Positions 2-42,765 of a DNA stretch of 64,000 bases are shown one piece after another. Both the position numbers and the translations under genes were made by a program. Each line of letters begins with the position of its first letter. Position 1 is the stretch's first letter. The notes under the pieces were generated by a model. It saw only the letters and a program-made list of their open reading frames with translations. It made no database searches and had not been told where the DNA came from. Source of the DNA: Mytilus californianus (taxonomy: Eukaryota); the NCBI RefSeq assembly GCF_021869535.1, contig NW_026262679.1, positions 118,420,001 to 118,484,000 on the forward strand, read 5' to 3'.

Positions 2-556
2 ATACTGAAATGTAAATCTCAAATGAACGGTCCTGTAAAAGACACAATGTCTGACAAAAGCAGTTTGAATGGCAGTCTGACTAGGAATACTAGCTATGTT
101 TTTAAGTTGGGAAAATATTATGATGACATTAATGCAGACATTTTTTCTGATGAGCCTTCTCCTATTTTAAATCCAATAATTGGTGAATCTGTGATAAAAC
201 TGTGGAGCCAGTGTTACCTAAGATGGCAGACCCCGGCACAGATTGTAGGGGGAGGTAACCCCGCTCAGTATTTTCAACAATGTATCATGATGGAAGAAAT
301 TATCCACCTCCAACATAGACTGTCGTCACTGAATTCCAAGTGTCATCAACGTAGACCGAGTAGTAATCTTATTTTTAGTTCAGACAAACCGAAGGACCAA
401 CATGATAATATGTTGGACAGTACTTATTTGACTTCATCATTTCCATTTTCTTCGGGTCCGAGAGCACAGAACAAACCATCGTTAATTTTTACACCTATAA
501 GTGTCTACTTACAGAACAGTGCGATCGACAATGATTACAGAGATTCTGAAGATTAA
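2..556 (+). CDS. Terminal coding exon of a myotubularin-related protein of the MTMR10/11/12 group (3-PAP-type C-terminus); 5' part lies outside the window
   Basis: Frame is open from base 2 (ILKCKSQM...) to TAA 554-556. The segment ILNPIIGESVIKLWSQCYLRWQTPAQIVGGGNPAQYFQQCIMMEEIIHLQHRL...SSFPFS resembles the recalled MTMR12/MTMR10 C-terminus (IKVWAQRYLRWIPEAQILGGG...MMEEVQSLQEKI...SSLFPF). A long AT-rich 3'UTR-like tract follows. Confidence 0.75.
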   Translation: MLKCKSQMNGPVKDTMSDKSSLNGSLTRNTSYVFKLGKYYDDINADIFSDEPSPILNPIIGESVIKLWSQCYLRWQTPAQIVGGGNPAQYFQQCIMMEEIIHLQHRLSSLNSKCHQRRPSSNLIFSSDKPKDQHDNMLDSTYLTSSFPFSSGPRAQNKPSLIFTPISVYLQNSAIDNDYRDSED

Positions 557-19515: not shown

Positions 19516-21624
19516 GTAAGTATAATCCTATTTTTACACATTTACATTATATTATACACACATGTACTGAAACATGAAACAACTTTAAAAGATGAATAAG
19601 TTCAACATGAATCCTGTCACCTACATCCAAGGGCAGTAACTCCATCAGAAGTACATTGTTGTATATCAACATGAACAAAACATTATATGGAAATGTATAT
19701 ATAGAATTAGGACAAGTAGTTTTCCATATACGACTGTGGATATGGATATACACATGGACTCCAAAGTTACTTTAATATTTCCTCTACTTTGTTGAAGTGA
19801 ACTAAAAATACCATTGACATTGACAATGTAACTAGTTTATTCTCTTCATCACTTGTTCTTGCAGTAAAATTGAATGTGGTTATGTATATTGTCTATAATT
19901 AATTCAACAAAACATAAAATGAAGGTTGATACCTGTCAATCTATAACAGTCAATAACAAGAATGTGTCCATAGTACAGGATGCCCCACTCGCACTATCAT
20001 TTTCTATGTTCAGTGGACTGTGAAATTGGGGGTCAAAACTCTAATTTGGCATTATAATTAGAAAGATCATATCATAGGGAACATGTGAACTAAGTTTCAA
20101 GTTTCAAGTTTCAACGCACAGACCAGAAAACATAATGCCCCTACTACTATCGTAGGTGGGGCATAAAAATTCATTCTATCTTACCACAATAGGTCAATAG
20201 TAAAAACACAACTACTGATATATAATTAGATGAACTTTATTTTGAACTGTGGTGTAACTGAATATTTAGTTTCAATGAATTTGGTTATTCATTTCTGCTA
20301 GCCAAAAGTCAAAGTCACAATCATACCAAACTTCCAAGAAGATGTCTTTTTATCATTTGTTTATTGGGTTGCTGTCTTATTCTCTATCAGATCTACTAAT
20401 TTTGGATAATGAAATCTATTCCTGTCACATGATATTTACTTCAATAATGTTGTTGGTCTATTTAATTCTAAATAAATATTTAACTTTTAAAGTTAATTGT
20501 ACTTATACTTCTACATAAAAGAAAACAAAATAAGTCTTTTCATTTGATGCCCTATTTTATCTTTTGACTGTACACATGAAAGAGTTTGTGTTTTTTCTTC
20601 CTTGTAAATTGTCATTACTAAAGATTTAAACTTATAATATTAATTTTCTCTACATGGAATAAATTCTCCATACAATTTTTTGCCTATTAGATCGTGTTTT
20701 GCTTGTTTGGAAATCTGAAATAATAGTGAAGATATAAATGAAAGGAAGTATGGAGTATCTTAGGGCAACCGGACAAACCATAAATCCCAATAAAAAGAAG
20801 TTTACAGAGGCTTTTGAGTAAATCATTTGAATCCATGAAGTAGACTTTTTTTAGCCCCCCTTTAAATAAACAATCAAAAAGTATTACAAAGCTATCAAGT
20901 AATATACTTCAGATGTTCACAAGATATTCAACTGTTACATATCAGTATCTACATTTAAAAAATTTGTCTTGCATATTTGCTTTAGGACTTCAAACTCATT
21001 GCATCAAAGCAAATTTGCAAATTAACCTCATTTTGAGACCATGTCAATTACATCTAGATTTAAGTCACAACCTTACTTAAAAAGATTTTGCTACAAGATA
21101 TCTTAAAGAAAGATGTTAATTCAGATAAAAATATCTTTTGGGTAAGGTTGTGGCTCATTTCTAATTTTGTCAAAACTATAAAGAAGATAAATTTAGATCA
21201 AATGTGTCAATTTTAACATGCCAATGACATTTCTACACTAAATTATTCAGATAATATCAACCTATTTTTTAATCAATAAATTGACAACTATGTAAGGATT
21301 GAAAATTTTTCATTTTATTTGCAATTTAAGGGGCCAGACTTGGTAATTCGACAGAACTTCAAAAGTTTCCTCCCAAAGATTCAATTAAGTCGAACTTAAA
21401 AGCCAATATTTGTTTCGTAATAAGATAAGTATTGCTTCAGGGAACTTAACCATAAATTAACACCACCAAAGACATTCTAATGATTTTTAAACCTGCTTCG
21501 CTAAAATCAAAATAAATCTGACAACTTGCAAGAGAAAAAGTTAAATGTATGAAATTTTGGATGTAGAACATAAAATCCTTCACTTACATGATAAATACAA
21601 AATTACGTATCTTTGTTTTTTCAG

Positions 21625-24600
21625 ATGGTTGAGCAGACGAGTCAAAATGAGTCAACCACATCCAGTGGCAGTTTGTCTGACTCCTATGACATAGCTGTCA
21701 AAATGCTTAGCTCATCACAGATTGATGAGGCAGAGAAGCAATTTCTTTTTCTCTATCAACAAATGCAGGAAAAATCAGAAGATACAACACAGATTCTTGT
21801 TCAAACATTGAATGGGCTTGCTGATGTCTGCACCCGAAGAAGTCGTATGTGCCGGTCCAATCCGATGGAATGGCAGTGGCTTTGTATGCATGCAATTGCT
21901 CTCCTTCAATATACAATGGAAATTTGTGATTCTGAATTAGAAACAGAAATGGAAAATGATACAATTGAATGGTACACAGAACAAAAGCACGATCTTGAAC
22001 AGAAATGTAAGCCTTTAGAAGACAGTCTAAATAGAGCTTTATATAATTGTATGAAACATGAAGCAAGAAAATATTTGGACCCTTTTCGTTCATTTTCTCT
22101 CCCCAATACTCCTGGAACACCATCAAGAAGTATGTTTCCTTTATCTACTGGAAACAAATTCACACTATATTCAACCATGCATTCTCAAATCATTAGTAAA
22201 ACCAATGAAAACCAAAGTGCTGATGATAGCCATTCTGGCCTGTCATGGCTATCCAAATTCCATCAGTACTGTAATGACAGACTTCAAACCAAAAATATAG
22301 GGACTATTTTCAATAGACTTTTTCTTAAAAGGCAGAATCATTCCAAGCATGAAAATGATGATACAGAAAGTGTGGTATCAGGAGGTTCTTTAGATTGGGA
22401 TCATAGTGATTTAGATAGGGAAATTTGTAACGGTCATCCACCGGACGAGGAATCAGAGTCTCCTGTCAAAGAACATTCACTTGGTTTTGAACTTGCTGCA
22501 AGTGACATAAACAATGAAGGATGGGATTTCTTCTTAGGGGATCGCAAGAACTGTACTTTTGAAAGTGTAGTACAAGTAGCGTCAAATCCACATCATACAA
22601 ATGGACCTTCGAAAAAAGACATTATTGACATTCAAAGAAGAGAAAGCATTAAAGAAAAAGAAGTTGTCTCCCCCTTACATGATCATAGTATTAAACTGAC
22701 TTTGACAAAATGTTATGCTAAGTTAGCAGATAAACTAATGACAGAGGAAGAATATGCAAATGCAGAAGTCATCTATGAACAAGTGTTAGAAATTGTCGAT
22801 GAAATTCAAGATGGTACTGCTGGCATGCTTAGATTTTATGCTAGACTTCTCAAGAATTGTGGAACTGCAAAATCAAAACAAGGAAAAATGTCTCAGGGGT
22901 TAAAATTACTGAACAAAGCGCTTGAGACCTATCGTGACTTACAAGATGATGAGGCTAATTTTGAAATAGCTCTTGCTTTATTGGAACTAGGAAATGGTTA
23001 TGTTACTGGTCGAGATAAAGACAATGCTGTGTTCAGTTATGCTATAGGTGCCATTTGTGAATTCTTCGAAAAAGACGGATCTGATGATGTTACAAGCTCT
23101 ACATCAAGTTCAAAATCTGAGTTTTCTTCACCTGAGAAAATTGAGGAAGAGCAGAATATTGATGATGCAATACAGTGTTACAAAGAAGCTTTACACCTCC
23201 TGCGTAATCATGAAAGTCAAAGTGAGGGAAAGCAATCAGATTTGGTTGCAAGATCGACTAGAAGATTAGCGGACTGTTACTTTATGCAAAAAGAATATGA
23301 TAAGGCACTTGATTGCTATGAAAAATCTTTATCCATGTTAAAGAATACTCAATCAGTAGGACGAGATCTTGTCTTAGAAAATGCTCATGTGTTGTGTATG
23401 CTTGGTGTCTCTAGTTTTATGCTGCTAATGTTTCCAAGAGCTGCATCAACCTTTGAACTGGCTTTACACATGGTAAAGTATGCCTTTTCGCTTAAAAGTA
23501 CATTTTTCCATGGACTTTTACTGGCCTTAATGGGAATTACATTCTATAAAATGAGAAATTATCATCGTTGTGTATCAATGTGTTTTCAGGCTTTCGAAAT
23601 ATTTTGTGCCCTACATGGTGATAAGTTACCAGAATTACCAAAGCATAAATTCTGGCTTGTTTGCCAAGTTCTCTATGTCATGGGAAATTCTTACAATAAT
23701 CTGAACTTGCATCAGAAAGCAATCAAATATCTTTCAGTGGCAAGATCAGTATTAATGGCATCTAAAAATAGAGATCGTCGACAGTTCATGAGAGTATTGC
23801 AAATTTTAGGAGATTGTTATTTTGCTCAGTACGATTATAAATCAGCTTTACAATTCTACAATGAAGCCCTGGAGTATGGAGATTGTGAAAGTCAGATTTC
23901 CTTCAACGAAGTTTTTGATGCAAATGCCAATTCTGATGAAATGTCAATGCACAACCAGCTTGTTAGCAAATCTGCAGAGGCTCACATTAGCATGCAACAA
24001 TATCAAAATGCAGTACACTATCTGGAACAAGCTCATGACATGCAAGAAACGATGGGAGATGATATTAAAGGAGACTTGGCCGCTACTCTTCATTCTCTTG
24101 GACAAATGTACTGTGGAGCAGGAGATGTGGATAAAGCAATTGATTCGTATAATGAAAGCTTAGAGGTCTACAGAGAAATTCATAATGGAAATTTAGGGCC
24201 CGAAGTCGTTTCAACATTAGGAGATCTTGCAGCAATGTGTTATGTAAAAGCCTGTCTTTGTGATGACGTCGATAGCGAGTTGGAAATGATTGTGGCCACT
24301 GAAAAATACTTCCAGGAAGCTCTAGCTCTTGGGAAAAACCCAGTAATAACTATTCGTTATGCAAATTTTTTATTTAGCCAAAATAATTATGTTGATGCTG
24401 TTAAACATTTGAAAACTGTTCTAGAGATAGAGGACATTGAAACAGCACAAGATCTGGTGTATGGTGGTTTAGAAAAAGTCACTCTACCAGATGTCCTACA
24501 AGATGAAGTGGACTGTCAAGAAGAAGTCGTACTCCCACCATCCTCCCTTGCCAGATATTTATTGATATTATCCCATATAAACTTGGGCCATACAAAACTT

Positions 24601-24918
24601 GCCGAGGACAATCTAATCGATCTCCTTATGGAAACATTAGATTATGATATTCCAATTTTATACTCAGTGCTTGGATATTCAATGATGGAGATGGGAGTTA
24701 TTGAAGAGGCAATTTGGTGCTTTGGAACAGCAGTATCTCTGGAAAATGACTATCGACTTGCAATAGATAATTTCTGTACATGTGTCTGTATTTGGGTTTT
24801 ACAAACTTTAGAAAGAGCTGTTGAAGTAATATGTACTTATTATGGAATATCTGTTAGTCCCATGTACTTGTCCACTACAAGTGAGAGCTCTTTTTCTTAT
24901 TCAAACTACCTTTTCTGA
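21625..24918 (+). CDS. 3.3-kb terminal exon of a large tetratricopeptide-repeat protein
   Basis: Acceptor ctttgttttttcag|ATG; 1097 codons plus stop. Many TPR-like units, e.g. TRRLADCYFMQKEYDKALDCYEKSLSM, LQILGDCYFAQYDYKSALQFYNEALEY, LHSLGQMYCGAGDVDKAIDSYNESLEVYREI. Confidence 0.92.
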   Translation: MVEQTSQNESTTSSGSLSDSYDIAVKMLSSSQIDEAEKQFLFLYQQMQEKSEDTTQILVQTLNGLADVCTRRSRMCRSNPMEWQWLCMHAIALLQYTMEICDSELETEMENDTIEWYTEQKHDLEQKCKPLEDSLNRALYNCMKHEARKYLDPFRSFSLPNTPGTPSRSMFPLSTGNKFTLYSTMHSQIISKTNENQSADDSHSGLSWLSKFHQYCNDRLQTKNIGTIFNRLFLKRQNHSKHENDDTESVVSGGSLDWDHSDLDREICNGHPPDEESESPVKEHSLGFELAASDINNEGWDFFLGDRKNCTFESVVQVASNPHHTNGPSKKDIIDIQRRESIKEKEVVSPLHDHSIKLTLTKCYAKLADKLMTEEEYANAEVIYEQVLEIVDEIQDGTAGMLRFYARLLKNCGTAKSKQGKMSQGLKLLNKALETYRDLQDDEANFEIALALLELGNGYVTGRDKDNAVFSYAIGAICEFFEKDGSDDVTSSTSSSKSEFSSPEKIEEEQNIDDAIQCYKEALHLLRNHESQSEGKQSDLVARSTRRLADCYFMQKEYDKALDCYEKSLSMLKNTQSVGRDLVLENAHVLCMLGVSSFMLLMFPRAASTFELALHMVKYAFSLKSTFFHGLLLALMGITFYKMRNYHRCVSMCFQAFEIFCALHGDKLPELPKHKFWLVCQVLYVMGNSYNNLNLHQKAIKYLSVARSVLMASKNRDRRQFMRVLQILGDCYFAQYDYKSALQFYNEALEYGDCESQISFNEVFDANANSDEMSMHNQLVSKSAEAHISMQQYQNAVHYLEQAHDMQETMGDDIKGDLAATLHSLGQMYCGAGDVDKAIDSYNESLEVYREIHNGNLGPEVVSTLGDLAAMCYVKACLCDDVDSELEMIVATEKYFQEALALGKNPVITIRYANFLFSQNNYVDAVKHLKTVLEIEDIETAQDLVYGGLEKVTLPDVLQDEVDCQEEVVLPPSSLARYLLILSHINLGHTKLAEDNLIDLLMETLDYDIPILYSVLGYSMMEMGVIEEAIWCFGTAVSLENDYRLAIDNFCTCVCIWVLQTLERAVEVICTYYGISVSPMYLSTTSESSFSYSNYLF

Positions 24919-29826: not shown

Positions 29827-31202
29827 ATCTTTCAGTGTTATTTGTATTGGGATACAATACTAAAGGTATATTAGAATAAGGTTAAAACAACAAACCAAAG
29901 AAATTAAGGTCTTTTATTTCATTTCCAAAATCTCAAAAAACATAAACATTTATTTAATTTAAGTTTGGTCTTTTTTCTTCAAAGTTCGAAATAAAAGAAA
30001 TGTTGACAGATCAAATTTCAGTAAAATAACAAGTCCAAGTCTTCCTCAAAACATACGCTTTATAAGTATTGTATTTATAAACTAGTTAATTTGTGCTTAA
30101 AATGCACCAATAATATACATGTAGTGAAAAAAATTCTTCAACTTCATGAATTACAACATTGTGCAGAAATTTCTAAAAGATCTGTTAAAATAATTGGACG
30201 GGCGGACACATGCCTGGTATTTCCATGTCCCCGGCAACACGTTATGTAGGGGACAATAAAAATTTACATCTCAAAGGGACATATTTCCTGTACAAATATT
30301 TCATTGATACTGATTTTCTAAATCACAAAAGACATTAAATGATATAAACCTTTGATATAAATTTTATCTAAATCTGACAAGAAATGTAGGCTCGAGAGTC
30401 CTTACAATGCAATTTTCAATATAATTTATATTTCCAAAAGGCATTACTCATTAAAAAAACAATTGATTGGTATTGATTTTCAAACTTGTCGAAGACATAT
30501 CTGATATAAACCTGTTACATAAATTTCATAAAAGTCTGGCAAGAACTGTAGTTGTGAGAATTCTTTCAAGGCTGTCCCCTGCACTGCAATGTTATGGGGT
30601 CAACAACTCAGAAGTCAAATTCAAGAAGGAAAATAACTGAAATCAGTCAACTATTAAAATATCTTATCTGCTAGTTAAAGTCACATAACTCCAAAATTAT
30701 TTAAATAATAGTGAAAGTTGAAATGAAGCTTAGTTCAATTAACTTTACACTGTATTAAGAATACATGAAAATTGCTCATAGCAAGGCCATCCTTAACAAA
30801 TTCTTTGTTTGATGTTGTCTATTCATGCCTTGTATGGTTGGGTAGGAAGGTAGGGATTTTATTTTTTTTTGCCAACAACTTAAGTTACATGTTATAAACG
30901 TTGGAGCAAAAAAAAACTTTTCATCTACCAAGACTTAATGTTCATGTATAGTTTGAAACTTTAGGCAGAATCAACAGTCATTGAAAGCTCAATGCAACAA
31001 TGGACTGTTTATCCTTCAAATTATTGGCAAAATATGTTTCACTACAGAAAGTGACAAAATCTAAAACTGAAATGGGTGCTGTTCTTTAGAAAATTCTCTG
31101 TATTCTTTACTTACATATATGATTACAAAAAAAGATCAGATATGTTCCCTTGCTTAATTTTTTAGTTACAATTATACAGTCCTTAAAGTACTACACTTTG
31201 TT

Positions 31203-31297
31203 TCATGACTTTGCCACTACTTCAAATCCATTTTGTCCAGGTATGAGATCTTCCATTTCACTTGTTACTTTGGGTAAATCATCAATGCAGAAGAAAT
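31203..31297 (-). CDS. TERB2: TERB2 coding exon 6 (terminal; putative MAJIN-binding segment) DFFCIDDLPKVTSEMEDLIPGQNGFEVVAKS*
   Basis: Acceptor ttttttttcag|; 2+93 nt; TGA at 31205-31203. Resembles recalled human GYISIDAMKKFLGELHDFIPGTSGY. Confidence 0.85.
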
Positions 31298-31310
31298 CTG
31301 AAAAAAAAAC

Positions 31311-31431
31311 CCAAAGAACATCATCTTATCCACACATACACTATAAAAAAAAACCAAAGAACATCATTTTATCCACACATACACTATAAAAAAAAAACCA
31401 ACAAACATCATTTTATCCACACATACACTAT
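31311..31431. repeat. 43-44-bp VNTR (~2.8 copies) abutting the TERB2 terminal-exon acceptor
   Basis: ccaaagaacatcatyttatccacacatacactataaaaaaaaa units start at 31311, 31354 and 31398. Confidence 0.9.
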
Positions 31432-32062
31432 CAAATATTAATGTTTATTTCATACTTTGAATATGGAATTTTTTGCTTAAATATTTCACAATCAGATAAA
31501 CTGCTTGAAAAATACCCTGCTAGAATAGTTAATAAATATTAACAATATGTGAAGGGAACACTTGTCATATGATGTAAGAATTATGTGAAAAGATCATATA
31601 TTGAAATTTGGACCCACATTCACAGTAGGTCAACTTGTCTTGTGATTTGCACCTTCTGTTTTCTACTTTATATTTTAGTTATGTGTTGTTTATGGTCTTC
31701 TGCTCATATTATTTGAGTCACTGTTATTATAAAAATATTGGAGTGAAATACACATAAAAAGTGTACATTATAAATATGTAATCACAAGGCCTTCAACAAT
31801 TAGCACTAGTGTGCTCTATGGAAAACTGTCTTGAGACAACTATTTTTTTTTTTCCTTTATGAGGTTATATCATTACATTCAGTGGTTCAATTCTTACAAT
31901 TAGTCAGATGCGTTGTGAGGGGCACAATATCCAAAGACATTTTTGCATTCAATATCACACTATATCATTTGAAAATTATAATTATGCACAATCAATAACC
32001 ATCAACAAATTTTCTGTTTTATTTGGGATTACCACTAGAAGACACTGATAAATAAAGAATAC

Positions 32063-32489
32063 CTTGATTATGTTGACTCTTGGTCTGACTAGAATGTCCA
32101 TTTGTATTGACATGTGAGTCCATTGTACCTTTATCAGTGTTATCTAGTACAATATCACCAACATCAATATATGGTAAATCACTGTAATTTTTTGGAGTTC
32201 TTTTGCGGAAACTGTAATTTTGCACATCTTCATTTGATTTTCTTTTATCACTACTAGTATTTGATTTTGGTTTATGTAGTTGAGAATCATTTTGTCTTTT
32301 TGAATTTTCCTTTGGTGAATTAGCTAACAATGAAGCATTTTGTCTTTTTTTAGATGGTGTTGCCTTTGGGTCTGTCTTCCCATCAAGTCTTTGTCCATCA
32401 CTTTTCTTTCTATCATTGTCTTTATTAGATTTTAACCCTGTATGCTGTGTATCTTCACCAATATGAACACCAACTGTTTTTTCATCATC
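32063..32489 (-). CDS. TERB2: TERB2 coding exon 5 (142 aa, low complexity, K/S/D/N-rich)
   Basis: Acceptor ttactaattag|GAT GAT, donor CAA G|gtattc; 427 nt, phase 0 to 1, open throughout and phase-compatible with both neighbours. Confidence 0.8.
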
Positions 32490-33200
32490 CTAATTAGTAA
32501 AATCAAAGCTATAAAGCTGTAACATAGAAGATCTCAACTAATTCATTATTTTTCATTCAATATTGAATTTTGTTAATGTTAGTCTTTTGTCATATGCTAA
32601 TAAGCTTTTGTAATTTAGAGGTATATGATGTTGATGGCAGATCTATGATAGTCATTTTAAATATATTAGCCTTTTTTTATAGACTTGAAGCAATTTAGAG
32701 CACCTATCTATTTTTGAAGACCATTTGCTGACCTCTAGATGTCTTTTGGTTATTTGTGTGTTTTTAGTTTGCTGTCTCATTGAAGTATACCACACACCTC
32801 CTCTTAATCACAACTTTTTTTCTAATGGTCTAAGAACCGAACTAGACAACAAAATGTATGTTTACAAATGCTTGCAAATGTCAAGTCCCCTTTTTGCTTT
32901 TGAATACTTTAAAAAAATGAAACTGTTAGGTGTAACTAACATCGATCAAGTTTAGTATCCTGTACAGATCTTGCTTACAAAATTATGTTTTAAGAAAATA
33001 TTATATAAAGATTTGCATTTTTCTAGAAGTATATATATTTTTTTCAAGTCAGAAGTATTTCCTTCCTATTACTATATTTTATATCACACATTAAAAAAAC
33101 ATTTGCAAAAAATTTGTTAGGCTGTATTTCATACATTAAAGCGTTCACAGTTATATTTGCCATTAAACAATGCACTTGAGATGTAACAATTTGTACAAAC

Positions 33201-33262
33201 CTCCTCACTAGATACTCCACTGTCTGTATCATCCCAGATATACTTCATCTGTTTCCTTACCA
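33201..33262 (-). CDS. TERB2: TERB2 coding exon 4 (LVRKQMKYIWDDTDSGVSSEE)
   Basis: attttcag|...GAG|gtttgt; 62 nt. Resembles recalled human EIRRKIGSFIWEQD. Confidence 0.85.
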
Positions 33263-33892
33263 CTGAAAATATATATAGTCAAATATAGAATTAATTTTAC
33301 CTGGGATGAAAATCATGTCCTCCCCATAGCACCAAATTATGTAGTTTTTGTGGGAGTAGCTGAGGCCTTATTTATCTTCTGATTTTATTTTTTTTTTGGT
33401 GCCGTCTGTCCTGTCTATACTTCTGATTTTTTATCTGTCCTTGAAGTATACAAGAGTGCGAAGTGGGAAAACTAGTTAACTTAATCATAAAGTATTTCTG
33501 AAAAATTGACCTGAATGCAAAACCACAGTCACTAATAGACATAAGTGGCACCCAATTGTTGCTGAATTATGTTATTTTATAGTTGTTACTTCTCAGTGAT
33601 ACATTGCTTATCACAACTTAATTTTTAGAAAAGATACTGTTAAAAGTAAAACTGGAAGAAAAACATCAAAATTATAATTTTTCTAATAACATATTACAAT
33701 GAATAAATTATGGTCATGATACTTTTAAAATTTTGATTACTGGTGTTTCATGTGTCAAAAAATTGTCATTTTAAAGATAAGTTAGATGTGTGGTTTTTTG
33801 TTATTTCAGTTTGTGCTATATTCAAACCAAATAAGTCCCTAAATACAGTAGTCGTTACGCTTTTTTTTAAATGCTATAAAATAATACATTAC

Positions 33893-34029
33893 AATTCTGT
33901 ATTTCTTTTGGAGGCAAGAAGTATTTTCCAACTGGTATTTTCTGGGTAGGCACTTTTGTAGAATCAGAAATATACTTTGCATGGAATACAGCAAGGTGTT
34001 CATCTCTATATGCACTACTCTGAAATATT
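33893..34029 (-). CDS. TERB2: TERB2 coding exon 3 (IFQSSAYRDEHLAVFHAKYISDSTKVPTQKIPVGKYFLPPKEIQN)
   Basis: ttttatag|...T|gtaatg; 137 nt. Resembles recalled human IYQSLDYIEDNATVFHAYYLSAV...VALGHFILPP. Confidence 0.9.
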
Positions 34030-35221
34030 CTATAAAACAAAAAAAATGAATAAACTGTAGTCTTTCATTGCACTTCATAGAAATCAAATTGTTGTGTAAA
34101 ATTATTGTCAGAAAAAGCATCTTCAATAAACTCAAATGTAAAATTTAACAACTGTAATATTGAAATATGACAATACAAGTCATGATTAAATTCATTTTTA
34201 TTTTCCATTTTTAAAGGTACATAACTTGAGAACTGTAAAATTAGAACTTGATCTGTATTAGGTGGTAATATGCATTGTGTATAAGTTTCATAATATTTGG
34301 TTCAGGCAAAGTAAAATTAGAGGGCAGAAACAGCAAATTCAGCATTTTTTCCATTTAAAAGGGACATAATGATACCTTGAAGAATGGTGAAAGTGATGCA
34401 CCCAAATTCGATCTTGATCTGTGTTTGAAGGTAATAATCATTGTGTGTTAAGTTTCATAACATTTGGTTGAGGCAAACTAAAGTTAAAGAACAGAAACCA
34501 ATTTCGGGATGTACAGACAAGGGTGAAACTTAATGTCCCTGTCGCCTAGCGGCAGGTCCATAAAAATATAATTCATAGCATGAGTTATCATGGTTATGGT
34601 TACCACATTGCAATATTGCAGAAATTTGAGAGTTAAGACAGAAATCTATATAAACCAGGTCAATTTGTTTTTCAAATTTTTTTCATACAGAGTACTGTGG
34701 ATTAATTTATTTTCATGGATACCAATTTTTGTGGATTGAGTAAACTTATAATATTATGGATATGCCAAAGAAAATGTAAACTTCGTTGAACATTCAAATT
34801 CTTGGTTTACCTATATAGCCACGAAATCCAAGAACAATAATAAGTCCATGTTAGTACATACTTTTTTCCCTTCCTTTGTATCTTTATTCGCAGTAACGGT
34901 CCCTGAGCTTCAACTTTCGCTACGTGAAACAGTTATAAAGCTTTCAAAAACTGGTGGTCAGGGGTTTATTTCATGTATATGTAAAGGGGGTGCAGCACTT
35001 CTTTATGTTAATGTAAAATTCAAAAGATATTGTGCAATTCGCAATGCCATAATTCACTCACATGCTCAAACAAATGATATAGAACTATTTTTTGTATTTT
35101 GTAAATAAGGTTAATTGTGTGGTCATTAAATAAAAAAAATATAATGTGTATCAATGCTTTTTTATAACAAAATCAATACTATTAATTATTGTACAAGTTA
35201 TAAGTGAATTTTAGTCAAATG

Positions 35222-35350
35222 TTGTACAAATTGTAATTTGTACAAGCACTTTTTGTACAAATTACAATTTGTACAAAGTCAAAATACAATTATAATTTGT
35301 ACAATTTTTTTGTACAAATTATAATTTGTAAAAAATGATAACTTGTACAC
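35222..35350. repeat. Cluster of 24-bp near-palindromic units TTGTACAAATTRYAATTTGTACAA in a TERB2 intron
   Basis: Units at 35222, 35253, ~35285 (partial) and 35310. Units 1 and 2 are exact reverse complements of each other. Confidence 0.85.
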
Positions 35351-36979
35351 AACATATTTATATTATCAGGATGGTTTTGTTAGTCAGTTACAGACATATA
35401 GCTGAATTTATATTCACTTCTTATGTATAAAGAAACATGTGGAGTCTTACAGCAAAAGAATATTCCAAGGGCAAACAATAAAATAGTGTTAACCCATTAA
35501 ATTCAATACTCACAGGCTTTAACCAGACATAATTTAATCTACTTTTTCATAATCTTCTTATTTTTGGAGAAAAAGAAATTGCTTAAAGCTGTTCCAGAAT
35601 TTATTGTGTTGGGGGGTCAAAGGCAGTTTTATAAAATTTAATGAGTGGTGAATATTTTAGAAAGTTTGGTTGTACAATTAGAGAAAAAAATCGCTTAAAA
35701 ATTTCATGCATGGCAAGGTCAACTGTAAAAAAAAAAATATATATAGGGTTCAACAGAACCATGTGTCTCATCTGCTATTGCTGTCGTCAATATATTGTTG
35801 GCTGTGAAGTCCATTTATCAGTAAAGTAGTGATGTATTTTTTAATGGTACTTTTCTTTTAAAGATGCTATTTCTTGATCTTTCATAAATTTCTTTCCAAG
35901 TTTAATAACATGTCATGAAAGTTAAACAAAGTTATCGATTTCTAAATTTGTTTTATCCAAGCCTGAATGTAAATGTTTAATCGGTCACATATATGGAATA
36001 AAGAGCTGCGCCAAGAGCGCATGATACGCCAGTTGCTTTTTCAAAGAATAAAGTTCCATAACTCCTCGATGTCATACCAGAAATGTATAAAAAAACTAAA
36101 GGGAGGTTATTTTGATAGATATAAAACAGTCACCAAAGTTTCATGAAAACTGCTCAAAGCATTTTTGAGTTATTGTCTGAAACTTGACATATGGACGGAA
36201 GGACAGACGGACAGACAATGGTATACCATAATACGTCCTGTAAATGGGCGTATAAAAATGAAGACGTTATAACTTAATCATAAAAAATCCTCTTTCCAAG
36301 TTTTGTAAAATTCTATGAAGGTTTGACAAGTTATAAATGTTTGGAAACTTTAGGCTGTACCTTAATGTGATAACCAATTTTTTCCAGTAAAAAACATAAT
36401 AAACAAGAATGTGTCCATAGTACATGGATGCCCCACTGGCACTATCATTTTCTATGTTCAGTGGACTGTGAAATTGGGGGTCAAAACTCTAATTTGGCAT
36501 TAAAATTAGAAAGATCATATCATAGGGAACATGTGTACTAATTTTCAAGTTGATTGGACTTCAACTTCATCAAAAACTACCTTGACCAAAAACTTTAATC
36601 TGAAGCGGGACAGACGGACAAACGGACAGACGCGTAGACAGAAAAACATAATGCCCCTCTACTATCGTAGGTGGGGCATAAAAATGGAAGAAAATGTTTT
36701 CAATATTTTGCTCTTGGTAGTGTCTTTTGATCATACCAAAGCTTCTGTGATTGTCCAAGTTTCTTAACCATTGTTATCATGCCAAGGAGGTTTAACTAAG
36801 TTATTGATGTCTAAAAAAACTTTAACCACAAACTGAACCTAATTGTTGACAATCCAGACTAGACCAGAATGTATGATTACTATGTCTTGTTTCAGGCTTG
36901 ACAAAAATTCCTTCAGACACCTCCCCCATACATTAATTTTTAAAACAGCCCTTACAATTTTCTGATGAAAAGAGCTTAC

Positions 36980-37061
36980 TGTTTTGTATCTTTACTGTCA
37001 GCATTTTCACTGAATATAAATTGTGCTGAGTCATAATCAGCTTGTTTTCCTCCTTGTTCCT
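36980..37061 (-). CDS. TERB2: TERB2 coding exon 2 (KEQGGKQADYDSAQFIFSENADSKDTKQ)
   Basis: ttgttttag|...CA|gtaagc; 82 nt. Resembles recalled human AEGGTISDPRAADFLFSCDASHPDT. Confidence 0.9.
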
Positions 37062-38697
37062 CTAAAACAAAAACAAATATGATCAACTTTTTAATTAAGA
37101 GAATTATCCTCTTTAACTTAAACAAATATGAATACTTAAAATGACAGAAATATCCTCTAAAACAAAATGATTCTTTTTATTTATAGCATTATTCTCTATT
37201 AACAACAAGAATCATGTGTAGTGCTAAGCATATCCCCACTCATAACCTAAAGTACTGTAAAACTGGAAGAAGGTGTTTAACAGATCTCAAAAAGGCATAC
37301 ACATTACAAATGATCATCCCTGTTGATTTTGTTTACCTCCATTAAGGTAGCACAATACAAAGATTTTTTCAACCACAATCAGACAACTTTAAACTGATGT
37401 AATTTCTTTCATCCAACTCTAAAATTCATAAATGAGGAACCAAAAGAAAGAAGAAAGATTTATCTTTCAAATGGTGATAATTTCATTATTACAAAATTAT
37501 TACAAGTTTGCAACCTTATTTCGTAAGAAATCACCCAATTTAATTGGGTATAAAATTTGTTCTATTGATGTTTTTGGAAATCTTAGACACGGTTTTGGAG
37601 ATAACTGGTCAAGGAACAACATGTGGTAAAATCAGGCATATAGGGGCATCTGTATAGGAGCTAATTTCATTTAAAATAACATTTTCATGACAAAAATGTA
37701 TGTGTCACAATTGAATAAATAAGGATTTTCCTATTAGAACCCCATTAACTTCAATATCATTCACACATGTACCATGGGGATACTTCAGGATCATAAATCA
37801 ATTAGGTTTTGACCAGTAAGTAAGCATTCCATTTCAGCAATTCTAAATATATAAAGAAAATGCACATCATATGCATCAAAAACCAGATCTGGCGAGAGAA
37901 GTTATATTATATTTGACCTTGCTGTAAGTCAGTTGCTACTGATATGGTCAAAACTCCACCCACCTTGCACTTGCTTTTTTCAATATGGATTTTTTTATTC
38001 AATTAGAACATGAAACAATATATTTTGTTTTAACATTTTCCCAAAAAGTAGTACATAAAATCATCAGTTGGTCAGTCTAGAGGATTCTTATGGGGGATTT
38101 CTAGAATTATAATTGTATACAATGAAAATATATAATTTTACACAAAGTAGAATTTTCTTATTTTTGTAGTTGGAAAATAAAATGTTTAATTTTGTGTTTT
38201 CTTTTAAATAGAATTCATATTACACATTCTCCTCAAGAAAATCTGATATAACCATCAGCATTAACATAAGCAACATTAATTGCTGTACATTTATATTTGA
38301 TTCTCTCTATAGCTCCAAATTATTTTTTTGTTTTTTTCTCCTGGCAGCTCCAATACAGAAATGTATTTTTATTTGTATTTCATTATCTTCTTTTTTCTAA
38401 AAACCCTGAATTCAACCTCTTTTCTATGACTGTTATTTTTATAGCTGGTCAGTGGTCATAAAGCTATCAAATGATTCTATTATAAACCACAAAGTACTGC
38501 ACACATGTTCCTATTTGTATCAGTCAGACACATGCATTTGTTTATAAAACTAAATATCATCAAAACTCATAAACAGTGCAAGATATGGAAACTTATTTTT
38601 CTTCTGAGGTTTAGTAATATTAAAAAGTAACAAAAACAGCTGAAAATGAAATTTTGATAAAATTTAGTTGCTTTTGTATTGTGTTACCTTAAACAAG

Positions 38698-38935
38698 GGC
38701 CTCAGTGGCCGTGTGGTCTAAGTGGATCATTTTCTGTATTACCATCCTGATGTTATGAATTCAAACCTAGCACATGACAGGTGAATTTCACTCCTATCTT
38801 AATAGGACAAGCATTGTCAGTTTTCCTGCCAAAGTTGGTGGTTTTCTATGGCTTCCTCCACCAATAAAAACTGACCACCATGATTTAACCAATAATACAC
38901 AAAGTGGCATAAAACACCAACAATCAATCAATCAT
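38698..38935 (+). mobile_element. tRNA-derived SINE
   Basis: A-box-like tggccgtgtggtctaag, degenerate B-box gaattcaaacc, and a 3' tail aataaaaactgaccaccatgattt...aagtggcataaaacacc ending in caat repeats. Confidence 0.7.
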
Positions 38936-39642
38936 TTAACCAAATTTATCAGCAAACAGGAACTAGGTATCTGACAGATCTGAAAAATGCTCACACACTA
39001 CAAATCGCCACGGTCAAGTTGCTAACCAGATATGAAGCCATTTTGTTGAACTGACAGACAGACAAGGTAATTGCAATAAAACATTTAGGAGTGGGAGTAT
39101 AAGACTAGTCTTTTAATAAGATTCTAGGTATTATTAGAAATAGTTGGTCCAATTTGTTACTGTGTTGACCTTTTATCTGCACTCACTGTTGCGAATTATG
39201 TATAGACATTCGGAAAGCTATATTTAACATTTAATGCCCTTGACAGACAAGAAATAACAGTATAAAGAGCTGCAAATTTCATGCAATGTAATAAGTACCT
39301 GGTAATTTAAACCATTTTTAAATAACAAGACGGGTGTCTCATGTGGAGCAGAATCTGCTAACCCTTCCAGATCACCTAAGATCACCCCTGGTGTTTGGTG
39401 GGGTTTGTGTTGCTCAGTCTTTAGTTTTCTATGTTGTGTTTTGTATACTGTTGTTTGTCTTTTGATCATTTTTCATTTTTGGCCATGGCATTCTAGGTTT
39501 GTTTTGATTTATCAGATTGAATGTCCCTTTGATATCTTTCGTCTCCCTTTTGTGTTAAATGTCACAAAAATATTACCCAAGTCATACATGAATTATAAAT
39601 GTTATTAATTACAAATATTATCAAATTATTTTTAATAATTAC

Positions 39643-39727
39643 TCCATTTTGTCTTTCTTTCAGTTGAAACACTATCAGAAAACCATGCAGTCAGATCTTG
39701 AAATATTGGCATATTCTCCGACATCAT
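39643..39727 (-). CDS. TERB2: TERB2 coding exon 1 (MMSENMPIFQDLTAWFSDSVSTERKTKW)
   Basis: Acceptor at 39735 (tgtatccttttttcag|), in-frame TGA directly before ATG 39727, donor TGG A|gtaatt. Resembles recalled human MFQGQRGWFCGSVSQDLRQFW. Joined CDS 85+82+137+62+427+95 = 888 nt = 295 aa plus stop. Confidence 0.9.
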
Positions 39728-40439
39728 TCAGTTTCTGAAAAAAGGATACATAAATTATCTCCTCGACAGGAACAATAGGACACATTCCTTAAAATAAAAA
39801 AACTTAAAATTTAGGCATATTATTTTATAGAATTAATTTAAATCAAATACAAATATTATGATACATGAGATTGCATTTATAAATAGCACTGGAACTCAGT
39901 ATACTGCATCAGAATATAAAGGAGTTACTTATTTGAAGGTCAAACAACATTTTTTCAGCAAAATAGGGAATAAAAGAATATTCAGTCTGTATATCCCCAT
40001 CATTTTATCATTCATTTTTTTAGGCTAAAACTTATTTTTCTTATAAAAATGTGTTCGATAACTGCACGAGTCTAGGTAGACCCATCTGGACACATTATAA
40101 TGACTTCAAGCTATTAAATGTACCAGAATATGCTCATGCACCAATACAAGTTATAATTTCAAATAGCTCTAATTGTAAAGTGTTTTGGTTTCAACCTGGC
40201 TGGGAACTGAATTCATGACACTCTCACCCCTACTCACGAAAAGTAATAATCAAGGACATTTAAAACCATGAAATATATCTTTATTTTTCATATCTCTGCG
40301 TTTAAAAAAAAAAACTCCTCTTCATATATATATACAATCCCTTATTTCTATCATCAATTTCTTAAGGTATTCATGTAGAGAAGGGAAAACCATCCCATGT
40401 AACAAATTATCAGCCAGCTTCTCTGCATATGTTAAAACT

Positions 40440-41039: not shown

Positions 41040-42600
41040 TGGTTAGACCTGGTGTTTGCTTTTCTTTTAATTAGTATGTCAGTATATGGTATGGCAATTT
41101 TGTTGTTGGTGATTCTATGGAACATATTTGATCGGCTTTTAAGTCTTCTTTCTTATGATGGCCAGTGAAGTGTGTTTAGCATGTTTGTTACACTTTCAGT
41201 ATATTGGTATTAAGAACATACGTATCTTGCTGCACGTCTTTGGACTTTTTCTATGGAGTTTATGTTCTCAGTTGTGTAAGAGACCCAGATAGTGCAGCAG
41301 TATTCTAGTTTTAGCCTGATAAGGGCTTGGTATGCTTGGTCTTTAATGGTTACCGAGTTTATTTTTAGATTTTTTCTGATGAATGCAATGGTCTTGTTTG
41401 CATTTGATGTCATGTTCTGAATGTGTTTGTTCCACTTTAAATTTGATGATGTTATTACGCCGAGATATTTTGCATTTTCAACTGAATCAAGAATGTGTCC
41501 ATGCATATCATAATAAAAATGAATAGGTGTTTTCTTTGTGGTCACTCGAAGTATGTTCCATTTGTCAGGATGGAACTGCATTAGTCATGCGCAGTCTTGT
41601 TCCCACTTGATTGCCCCTTCTAGGTTTTCTTGGAGTTTTAGGCAATCTCATGTTGATTTTATCTGTTGGTAAATGATACTGTCATCAGCAAAGAGCCTGA
41701 TTTGACTGTGATGTAAATAGTCAGGTAAGTCATTGATGTATATTAAAATAGTATTTGACCTAATTTAGCGCCCTGAGGAACACCTGATGTAACTGGTATA
41801 TCGTCAGAGGAATGGTTTTCTAGTATGACTGTTTTTGTACAATTAGATAGGAAAGATTTCATCCAGTTTGTAGCTAATGTTCTGATACACAAAAAAATTT
41901 AAGTTGATAAAGTAATCGGTTGTGTGGAACTTTATCAAAGGCTTTTAAAATATACAAACCGATCTAATCATCATGGATTTCACTAAATTAGTGAAATCCA
42001 TGATGATTAGATCGGTTTGTATATTTTTATCGTTATTTGAACTTCAAGATAGCTGGTAAATCAGTGAAATTATCTGGGATTCCCTAGACCTACTTGCCCT
42101 GAAGCCGTGTTGCAAGTCATAAAGTATGTTGTTCGATTCAATCAAGGTGTGTCATGATGTTGCTTGCAAGTATGTGCTCTAATAATTTACAGGAAATACA
42201 TTGAGATTGGTCTATAGTTCCCAGGATGATGTCCGTCTCCTTTTTTGAAAACAGGTGTTACTTTGGGTGATTCCAATCATATTTCCTGTAAAAATTAGAG
42301 TGAGTATGTTTGTGCATGTGTTAATGTTTTCTTTTAGCACTATTCAGGTGAGTGAGTATTCCAGTTATGAATGTTATCTGGTCCTGTTGCTTTTTTACTT
42401 TTTAGGATTTATATTTTTAATTAATTTATAGATGCCTTCCTGTTGATGTCTATGTTGTCCATTATTGGATGTGTTGATGGACCTTTGTCAGGGATTACTG
42501 TATTAGTCTCAGATGTAAATGCTGATTTAAATTGTTCGTTTAAGATATTTGCTTTTTTCAAGGGATCTGTATGACTGTGGACACCCTGGACCATCGTTTA
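41040..42600 (-). pseudogene. Decayed 5'-truncated LINE (CR1/L2-type reverse transcriptase) in TERB2 intron 1
   Basis: Minus-strand motifs QTDLIIMDFT/KAFDKVPH, TSGVPQG, YINDLPD...IRLFADD, QFHPDK...YLGV, KVQRRAARYV, with frameshifts. Ends approximate. Confidence 0.9.
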
Positions 42601-42765
42601 ATTGATCAATTAAAAAGGTACCTATTTTGTTTCAGATCTTTTTTAACTGTCTAATGCTTAGCGAGACAATGACATGATATCTCACATCTAAATTTATTAC
42701 CAAACGCAAATGATGTTTGTCAAGTTGAATTTCCCGGACTTTTCGTCTGCAATAAATATTCTTAC

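Follow-up and report, generated by a model that had tools for sequence, protein, structure and literature searches.

Does the mussel Mytilus californianus carry an intact gene for TERB2, a member of the meiotic telomere complex known from mouse and human, and if so, is it the one that can be pieced together from six short exons in a single stretch of genomic DNA? The stretch considered here, called the window, comprises 64,000 nucleotides (NCBI RefSeq assembly GCF_021869535.1, contig NW_026262679.1, positions 118,420,001 to 118,484,000 of the forward strand) and is numbered from its first letter. The original prediction, made from those letters alone, held that six minus-strand exons between 31203 and 39734, bordered by GT-AG splice sites and agreeing in phase, join into a coding sequence (CDS) of 888 nt that encodes 295 amino acids (aa), a probable mollusc orthologue of TERB2. 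The locus is very probably just that: an intact and functional M. californianus TERB2 gene, consisting of at least one non-coding 5' exon and six coding exons, which encodes the 295-aa protein XP_052102383.1. The reading of the gene is correct but already known, as the exact protein has been annotated by NCBI under a TERB2-like name.

Six coding exons and an annotated protein

All borders of the six coding exons could be located in the sequence, on the minus strand. Exon 1 (39643..39734) opens with 7 nt of 5' untranslated region (UTR), and from the ATG at 39727 its coding part (39727-39643, 85 nt) specifies residues 1-28 and one base of codon 29, including the peptide block WFSDSV. Exon 2 (36980..37061, 82 nt) provides residues 29-56, with the block FIFSENAD. 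Exon 3 (33893..34029, 137 nt) provides residues 56-102, the core of the putative TERB1-binding domain, with Y63 and, at residues 92-96, YFLPP. Exon 4 (33201..33262) is the shortest, at 62 nt; its residues 103-122 are found exactly in XP_052102383.1, and it aligns with SFIWE of the human protein. Exon 5 (32063..32489, 427 nt) encodes residues 123-265, a fast-evolving linker rich in K, S, N, and D that is predicted to be disordered. Exon 6 (31203..31297, 95 nt including the TGA stop codon) completes the protein with residues 265-295, which contain the putative MAJIN-binding motif DLPKVTSEMEDLIPG. Every intron opens with GT and closes with an AG preceded by a pyrimidine-rich tract, the phases at which the exons start (0/1/2/1/0/1) are mutually consistent, and the total comes to 888 nt, or 295 aa, with four codons split between exons (K29, Q56, L102, and D265).

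The same protein stands in RefSeq, where XP_052102383.1/XP_052102385.1 (295 aa) bear the name [quoted passage not shown]. It was reached by an exhaustive search of representative proteins with exon 3, which returned 35 proteins, the top one a 294-aa protein of M. edulis (XP_071170246.1) that contains exon 3 at its residues 57-101, and then by a search with the M. edulis protein. The translations of the six exons are exact substrings of XP_052102383.1 (residues 1-28, 30-55, 57-101, 103-122, 123-264, and 266-295), and the four residues that remain, K29, Q56, L102, and D265, match the split codons. The annotated CDS spans 8,525 bp on JAKFGE010000003.1 (GCA_021869535.1), corresponding to 31203-39727, and the locus there is identical to the window base for base. 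The model does not differ from the RefSeq proteins in any respect, and the existing annotation has thus been re-derived from raw sequence. A word search with exon 5 alone found nothing among proteins of 78-248 aa, a range of lengths that accounts for the empty result, which is not evidence of absence. The track of open reading frames (ORFs) gives little hint of all this; as had been said of it, at a cut-off of 60 aa it shows, of this gene, only a fragment of one exon, a 103-aa piece of exon 5 (32019-32330).

Evidence from RNA comes by way of a relative. Logan contig L001 (SRR13891810), 1,447 nt in length, encodes an uninterrupted TERB2 of 292 aa that is 91% identical to the M. californianus protein. 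The contig carries no introns and is therefore derived from spliced RNA, and the nucleotide identity of 87-98% across its blocks points to a congener as the source of the run. Aligned to the window, L001 breaks at all five coding junctions as well as at a junction within the UTR, giving blocks at 39736-39643, 37061-36980, 34029-33893, 33262-33200, ~32489 to ~32063, and ~31297 onward, with the borders of exon 2 (37061-36980) and exon 3 (34029-33893) exact. Its first 29 nt lie at 42622..42650 on the minus strand, after which it jumps to 39734. Hence the gene possesses at least one non-coding 5' exon beyond the six that code for protein; the 3' end of this exon, at 42622, is spliced in L001 to the acceptor at 39734, and its donor, the GT at 42621-42620, stands in the window in the context ...ATAG|GTACCT. 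The upper limit of 39734 given in the original prediction is accordingly the acceptor site at which the first coding exon begins, with 7 nt of 5' UTR ahead of the ATG, and the spliced contig of the relative agrees. At the other end of the gene, L001 remains collinear with the window down to 30630, which makes 30630..31202 (minus strand) the minimum extent of the 3' UTR; a scan for hexamers places an AATAAA at 30863.

Might the gene be TERB2 but the model wrong in detail, with exon 5 ending at a donor at 32129 (yielding 274 aa) or with coding exons missing? There is indeed a second in-phase GT at 32128 (GTACAA), use of which would give a CDS of 822 nt, and one more upstream exon does exist, though it is non-coding. 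However, the donor at 32063 is the one used by XP_052102383.1, by XP_071170246.1 of M. edulis, and by the congener's contig, and on these grounds the 274-aa form was rejected as the main one. As for coding exons further upstream, the reading frame is closed by a TGA immediately before the ATG at 39727. An error of either kind is very unlikely.

Membership in the TERB2 family and constraint at both ends

What identifies the protein as TERB2? The model was searched exon by exon, and analyses at full length used the database protein XP_052102383.1, once it had been found identical. Against Pfam, exon 3 matched TERB2 (PF15101) and nothing else, at 29.8 bits (the gathering score is 27) over profile positions 49-94. 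Exons 2 and 6 also matched only TERB2, at 20.2 bits (profile 23-47) and 16 bits (profile 178-205), respectively, and the three matches are collinear with the profile. Exons 1, 4, and 5, searched singly, had no match in Pfam. The full-length protein matched PF15101 over positions 1-204 of 207 at 108.3 bits (expectation value, E, 6.6e-31), so the TERB2 profile that had been proposed as a check is matched above its gathering score by exon 3 alone and by the whole protein. Because three separate exons match one Pfam family in order, and because the protein is identical to the one in RefSeq, the match lies far beyond chance.

Known structures tell the same story. Amongst 177,635 distinct sequences in the PDB, exon 3 matched a single chain, human TERB2 (6J07_A). 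Exon 6 matched only C-terminal chains of TERB2 (6J08_D, 6GNY_B, and 6GNX_B), and these matches are weak on their own (E 0.33-0.84). Exon 2 alone, whose 26 aa are too short, found no match in the PDB, although the full RefSeq protein does align through exon 2. That protein aligns with the N-terminal domain of human TERB2 (6J07_A) over residues 14-113 (E 4.8e-14). Six peptide blocks (WFSDSV, FIFSENAD, AVFHAKYI, KYFLPP, KYIWD, and EDLIPG) had been put forward as aligning in order with the human protein; all six are on the minus strand where they had been placed, and the first five are paired with human TERB2 in the alignment of the RefSeq protein to 6J07_A. Pfam, the PDB, and identity to a TERB2-like protein of RefSeq thus bear out the assignment to a probable mollusc orthologue of TERB2.

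An AlphaFold2 model built with 27 mollusc sequences has a confident N-terminal domain, with a predicted local distance difference test score (pLDDT) of 92-97 at residues 10-112, followed by a disordered region (residues 116-264, pLDDT below 50) and a C-terminal tail of moderate confidence. Both the sequence and the fold of the N-terminal TERB1-binding domain (human residues 1-116) are conserved in the mussel protein. In human and mouse TERB2, Y56 is located in the core of the interface with TERB1, and with the mutation Y56E binding is lost and mice are sterile; F192 (F188 in mouse) plays the same role towards MAJIN (PMC6361898). The tyrosine aligned with Y56, mussel Y63, is invariant in the 27 mollusc sequences, as is E66 (human D59). 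The [F/Y]xLxP motif of TERB2 noted by da Cruz, Brochier-Armanet & Benavente (2020; PMC7227075) appears in mussel as YFLPP, aligned to FILPP in human, and across the molluscs its Y92 and P96 are invariant and its P95 nearly so. The C-terminal MAJIN-binding motif (human 168-202) is present in exon 6 and conserved across molluscs.

Judged by its mouse and human homologues, mussel TERB2 would be the adaptor in the middle of the meiotic telomere complex. The folded N-terminal domain (approximately residues 10-112, from exons 1-4) would hold TERB1 by its TERB2-binding helix-turn-helix, and TERB1 would itself sit on telomeric shelterin. The long, disordered linker of exon 5 would be flexible enough to span the distance from the telomere to the inner nuclear membrane, where the short hydrophobic motif at the C-terminus (exon 6) would wrap around the N-terminal domain of MAJIN, a protein of that membrane. 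Through these contacts, telomeres would be anchored at the nuclear envelope so that chromosomes can move in prophase I. This mammalian mechanism is the most likely one for mussel TERB2, although the function of TERB2 has been tested in mammals only, and the binding of partners, the expression in the germline, and the meiotic role of the mussel protein are expected purely from its homology with the proteins of mouse and human.

Several observations sit less comfortably with an intact and functional TERB2. At the position equivalent to F192, the hot spot for MAJIN binding, all Mytilus sequences have leucine (L282 in M. californianus). Other molluscs mostly have phenylalanine there, with valine in the mollusc sequence P0004. 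Since leucine retains a hydrophobic side chain, the difference is a conservative change, and the motif as such is not lost. Conservation likewise fails at human D55 and Q110, the mussel protein having A62 and D115 in their place. The linker is about three times as long as that of mammals, and this much longer linker is the reason that the mussel protein has 295 aa as compared to the ~220 aa of human and mouse TERB2 (6J07 with TERB1; 6J08, 6GNX, and 6GNY with MAJIN). Finally, expression in M. californianus, its specificity for tissue, and the use of the junctions rest on the RefSeq model and the contig from the congener.

One might therefore ask if the locus is a relic of TERB2, a decaying pseudogene whose frame has survived by chance. 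Codons were compared exon by exon with those of the congener's contig. In exons 1-4, the synonymous rate (dS) is 0.21 and the ratio of the nonsynonymous to the synonymous rate (dN/dS) is 0.05; in exon 6, dS is 0.06 and 30/30 residues are identical; in exon 5, the linker, dS is 0.13 and dN/dS is 0.61. Purifying selection on both binding ends is thus strong, with the linker left almost unconstrained. In favour of a relic stand the fast-evolving linker and the leucine in place of phenylalanine, and the evidence for a transcript does come from a relative and not from M. californianus itself. The constraint on both ends, however, counts against a pseudogene: neither the dN/dS of 0.05 in the N-terminal domain nor the perfectly preserved motif at the C-terminus, at a dS of ~0.06-0.2, is the mark of decay. 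Moreover, the frame of 295 codons is intact over six exons with canonical splice sites, four other Mytilus lineages have orthologues of the same length, a relative makes a spliced transcript, and the leucine is common to all Mytilus sequences. For the intact frame, the purifying selection, the Mytilus orthologues, and the relative's transcript, the relic was rejected as an explanation; its probability is minute.

A BRCT-like fold in the TERB1-binding domain

The N-terminal domain of TERB2 appears to have a divergent form of the alpha/beta fold of BRCT domains, which raises a further doubt about the locus: perhaps it encodes a generic protein of the BRCT fold, unrelated to TERB2 in function, and the short blocks reflect nothing but a common fold. 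The mussel protein, however, had no match to BRCT sequence profiles, and the profile that its exons do match, in order, belongs to TERB2, as do the only PDB chains matched by exons 3 and 6. The generic protein was rejected and is extremely improbable.

A different question is whether TERB2 proteins as a family descend from the BRCT superfamily. Matches to the BRCT_2 profile, all below threshold, were found in 7/27 of the mollusc orthologues, the best of them at 23.6 bits (the threshold is 27.3), with an E of 6.3e-5 over positions 4-80 of 86. The paper that solved 6J07 makes no mention of BRCT and gives the fold no name, and the literature searched contained no paper naming TERB2 together with BRCT. 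On the structural evidence and the weak profile evidence, the TERB1-binding domain may be, throughout the family, a BRCT domain in cryptic and strongly diverged form, put to new use as a constitutive adaptor between proteins, a possibility that we hold tentatively and would not quite call probable. If true, the BRCT origin would tie the metazoan adaptor of meiotic telomeres to a superfamily of scaffolds in DNA damage and repair and would give a hint as to the source of the complex. This is the only point of possible interest to specialists, and it concerns the TERB2 family, not the window.

Relatives, names, and neighbours

Homologues of TERB1, TERB2, and MAJIN in Mollusca (oysters, scallop, Aplysia, Lottia, and Elysia) were published in 2020 (PMC7227075). 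The bivalve and gastropod TERB2 proteins in that survey by da Cruz et al. belong to the same family as the mussel protein and have the same conserved blocks at the N- and C-termini; Mytilus lay outside the survey. The scallop protein on its TERB2 list, XP_021360479 of Mizuhopecten, is matched directly by exon 3 (64% identity, E 8.5e-9). At 186 aa it is much shorter than the mussel protein, its linker being short, and it retains phenylalanine at the F192 position. The scallop and abalone proteins matched by exon 3 carry TERB2-like names. In the literature searched, no paper pairing TERB2 with Mytilus was found. Still, with the gene already in RefSeq under the right name and with the same model, and with molluscan TERB2 on record, the locus itself has little significance, beyond demonstrating that the six-exon model of a fast-evolving gene can be recovered correctly in full from raw sequence without tools.

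The closest orthologues, XP_071170246.1 of M. edulis, XP_063434095.1 of M. trossulus, and XP_076105158.1 of M. galloprovincialis, each have 294 aa, are 84-86% identical to the M. californianus protein, and share its junction residues. The M. edulis protein matches PF15101 at 107 bits, and a match to PF15101 is precomputed for the representative of the cluster to which all three belong. NCBI nonetheless labels all three "uncharacterized protein". The expectation that annotation pipelines might leave the protein uncharacterised therefore holds for M. edulis, M. trossulus, and M. galloprovincialis but fails for M. californianus, where it is named TERB2-like. The three proteins can confidently be renamed TERB2-like, the sole gain for annotation.

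Two other sets of sequences came to light. Solemya velum has two TERB2-like proteins, KAL5018381.1 and KAL5003929.1, encoded on different contigs and belonging to one 90% cluster. TERB2 has been reported as single-copy (PMC7227075), and the pair could be the result of duplication or of haplotypes in the assembly. Three further proteins, P0001 (137 aa) and P0041/P0042 (134 aa), each arise where a single exon of Mytilus TERB2 (3 or 5) is read through into the intron beside it. They illustrate how TERB2 is fragmented when genes are called in prokaryotic style on genomic contigs.

In the window, TERB2 lies between a gene with an MBD domain, upstream and on the opposite strand, and a gene with TPR repeats, downstream. 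The former, of the MBD2/3 type (Pfam MBD, MBDa, and MBD_C), starts at ~42996 on the plus strand, and the 5' non-coding exon of TERB2 ends at 42622 on the minus strand; the two genes therefore diverge from one short promoter region. The true start of the non-coding exon is further upstream than the part covered by L001, towards this shared promoter. Within the first intron of TERB2, an ORF of 123 aa (41210-41581, minus strand) has no Pfam match at an E of 0.01 or better; by eye it resembled the end part of a reverse transcriptase from a retroelement. On the other side, convergent with TERB2, a single ORF of 1,101 aa (21613-24918, plus strand) contains many TPR repeats (TPR_12, 124.6 bits). The ORF belongs to an annotated protein of 1,223 aa and is unusually long as a single exon in this intron-rich genome. 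Near the edge of the window, an ORF of 177 aa (23-556, plus strand) matches the 3-PAP (myotubularin-associated protein) domain with an E of 8.3e-10 and probably represents one exon of a gene nearby.

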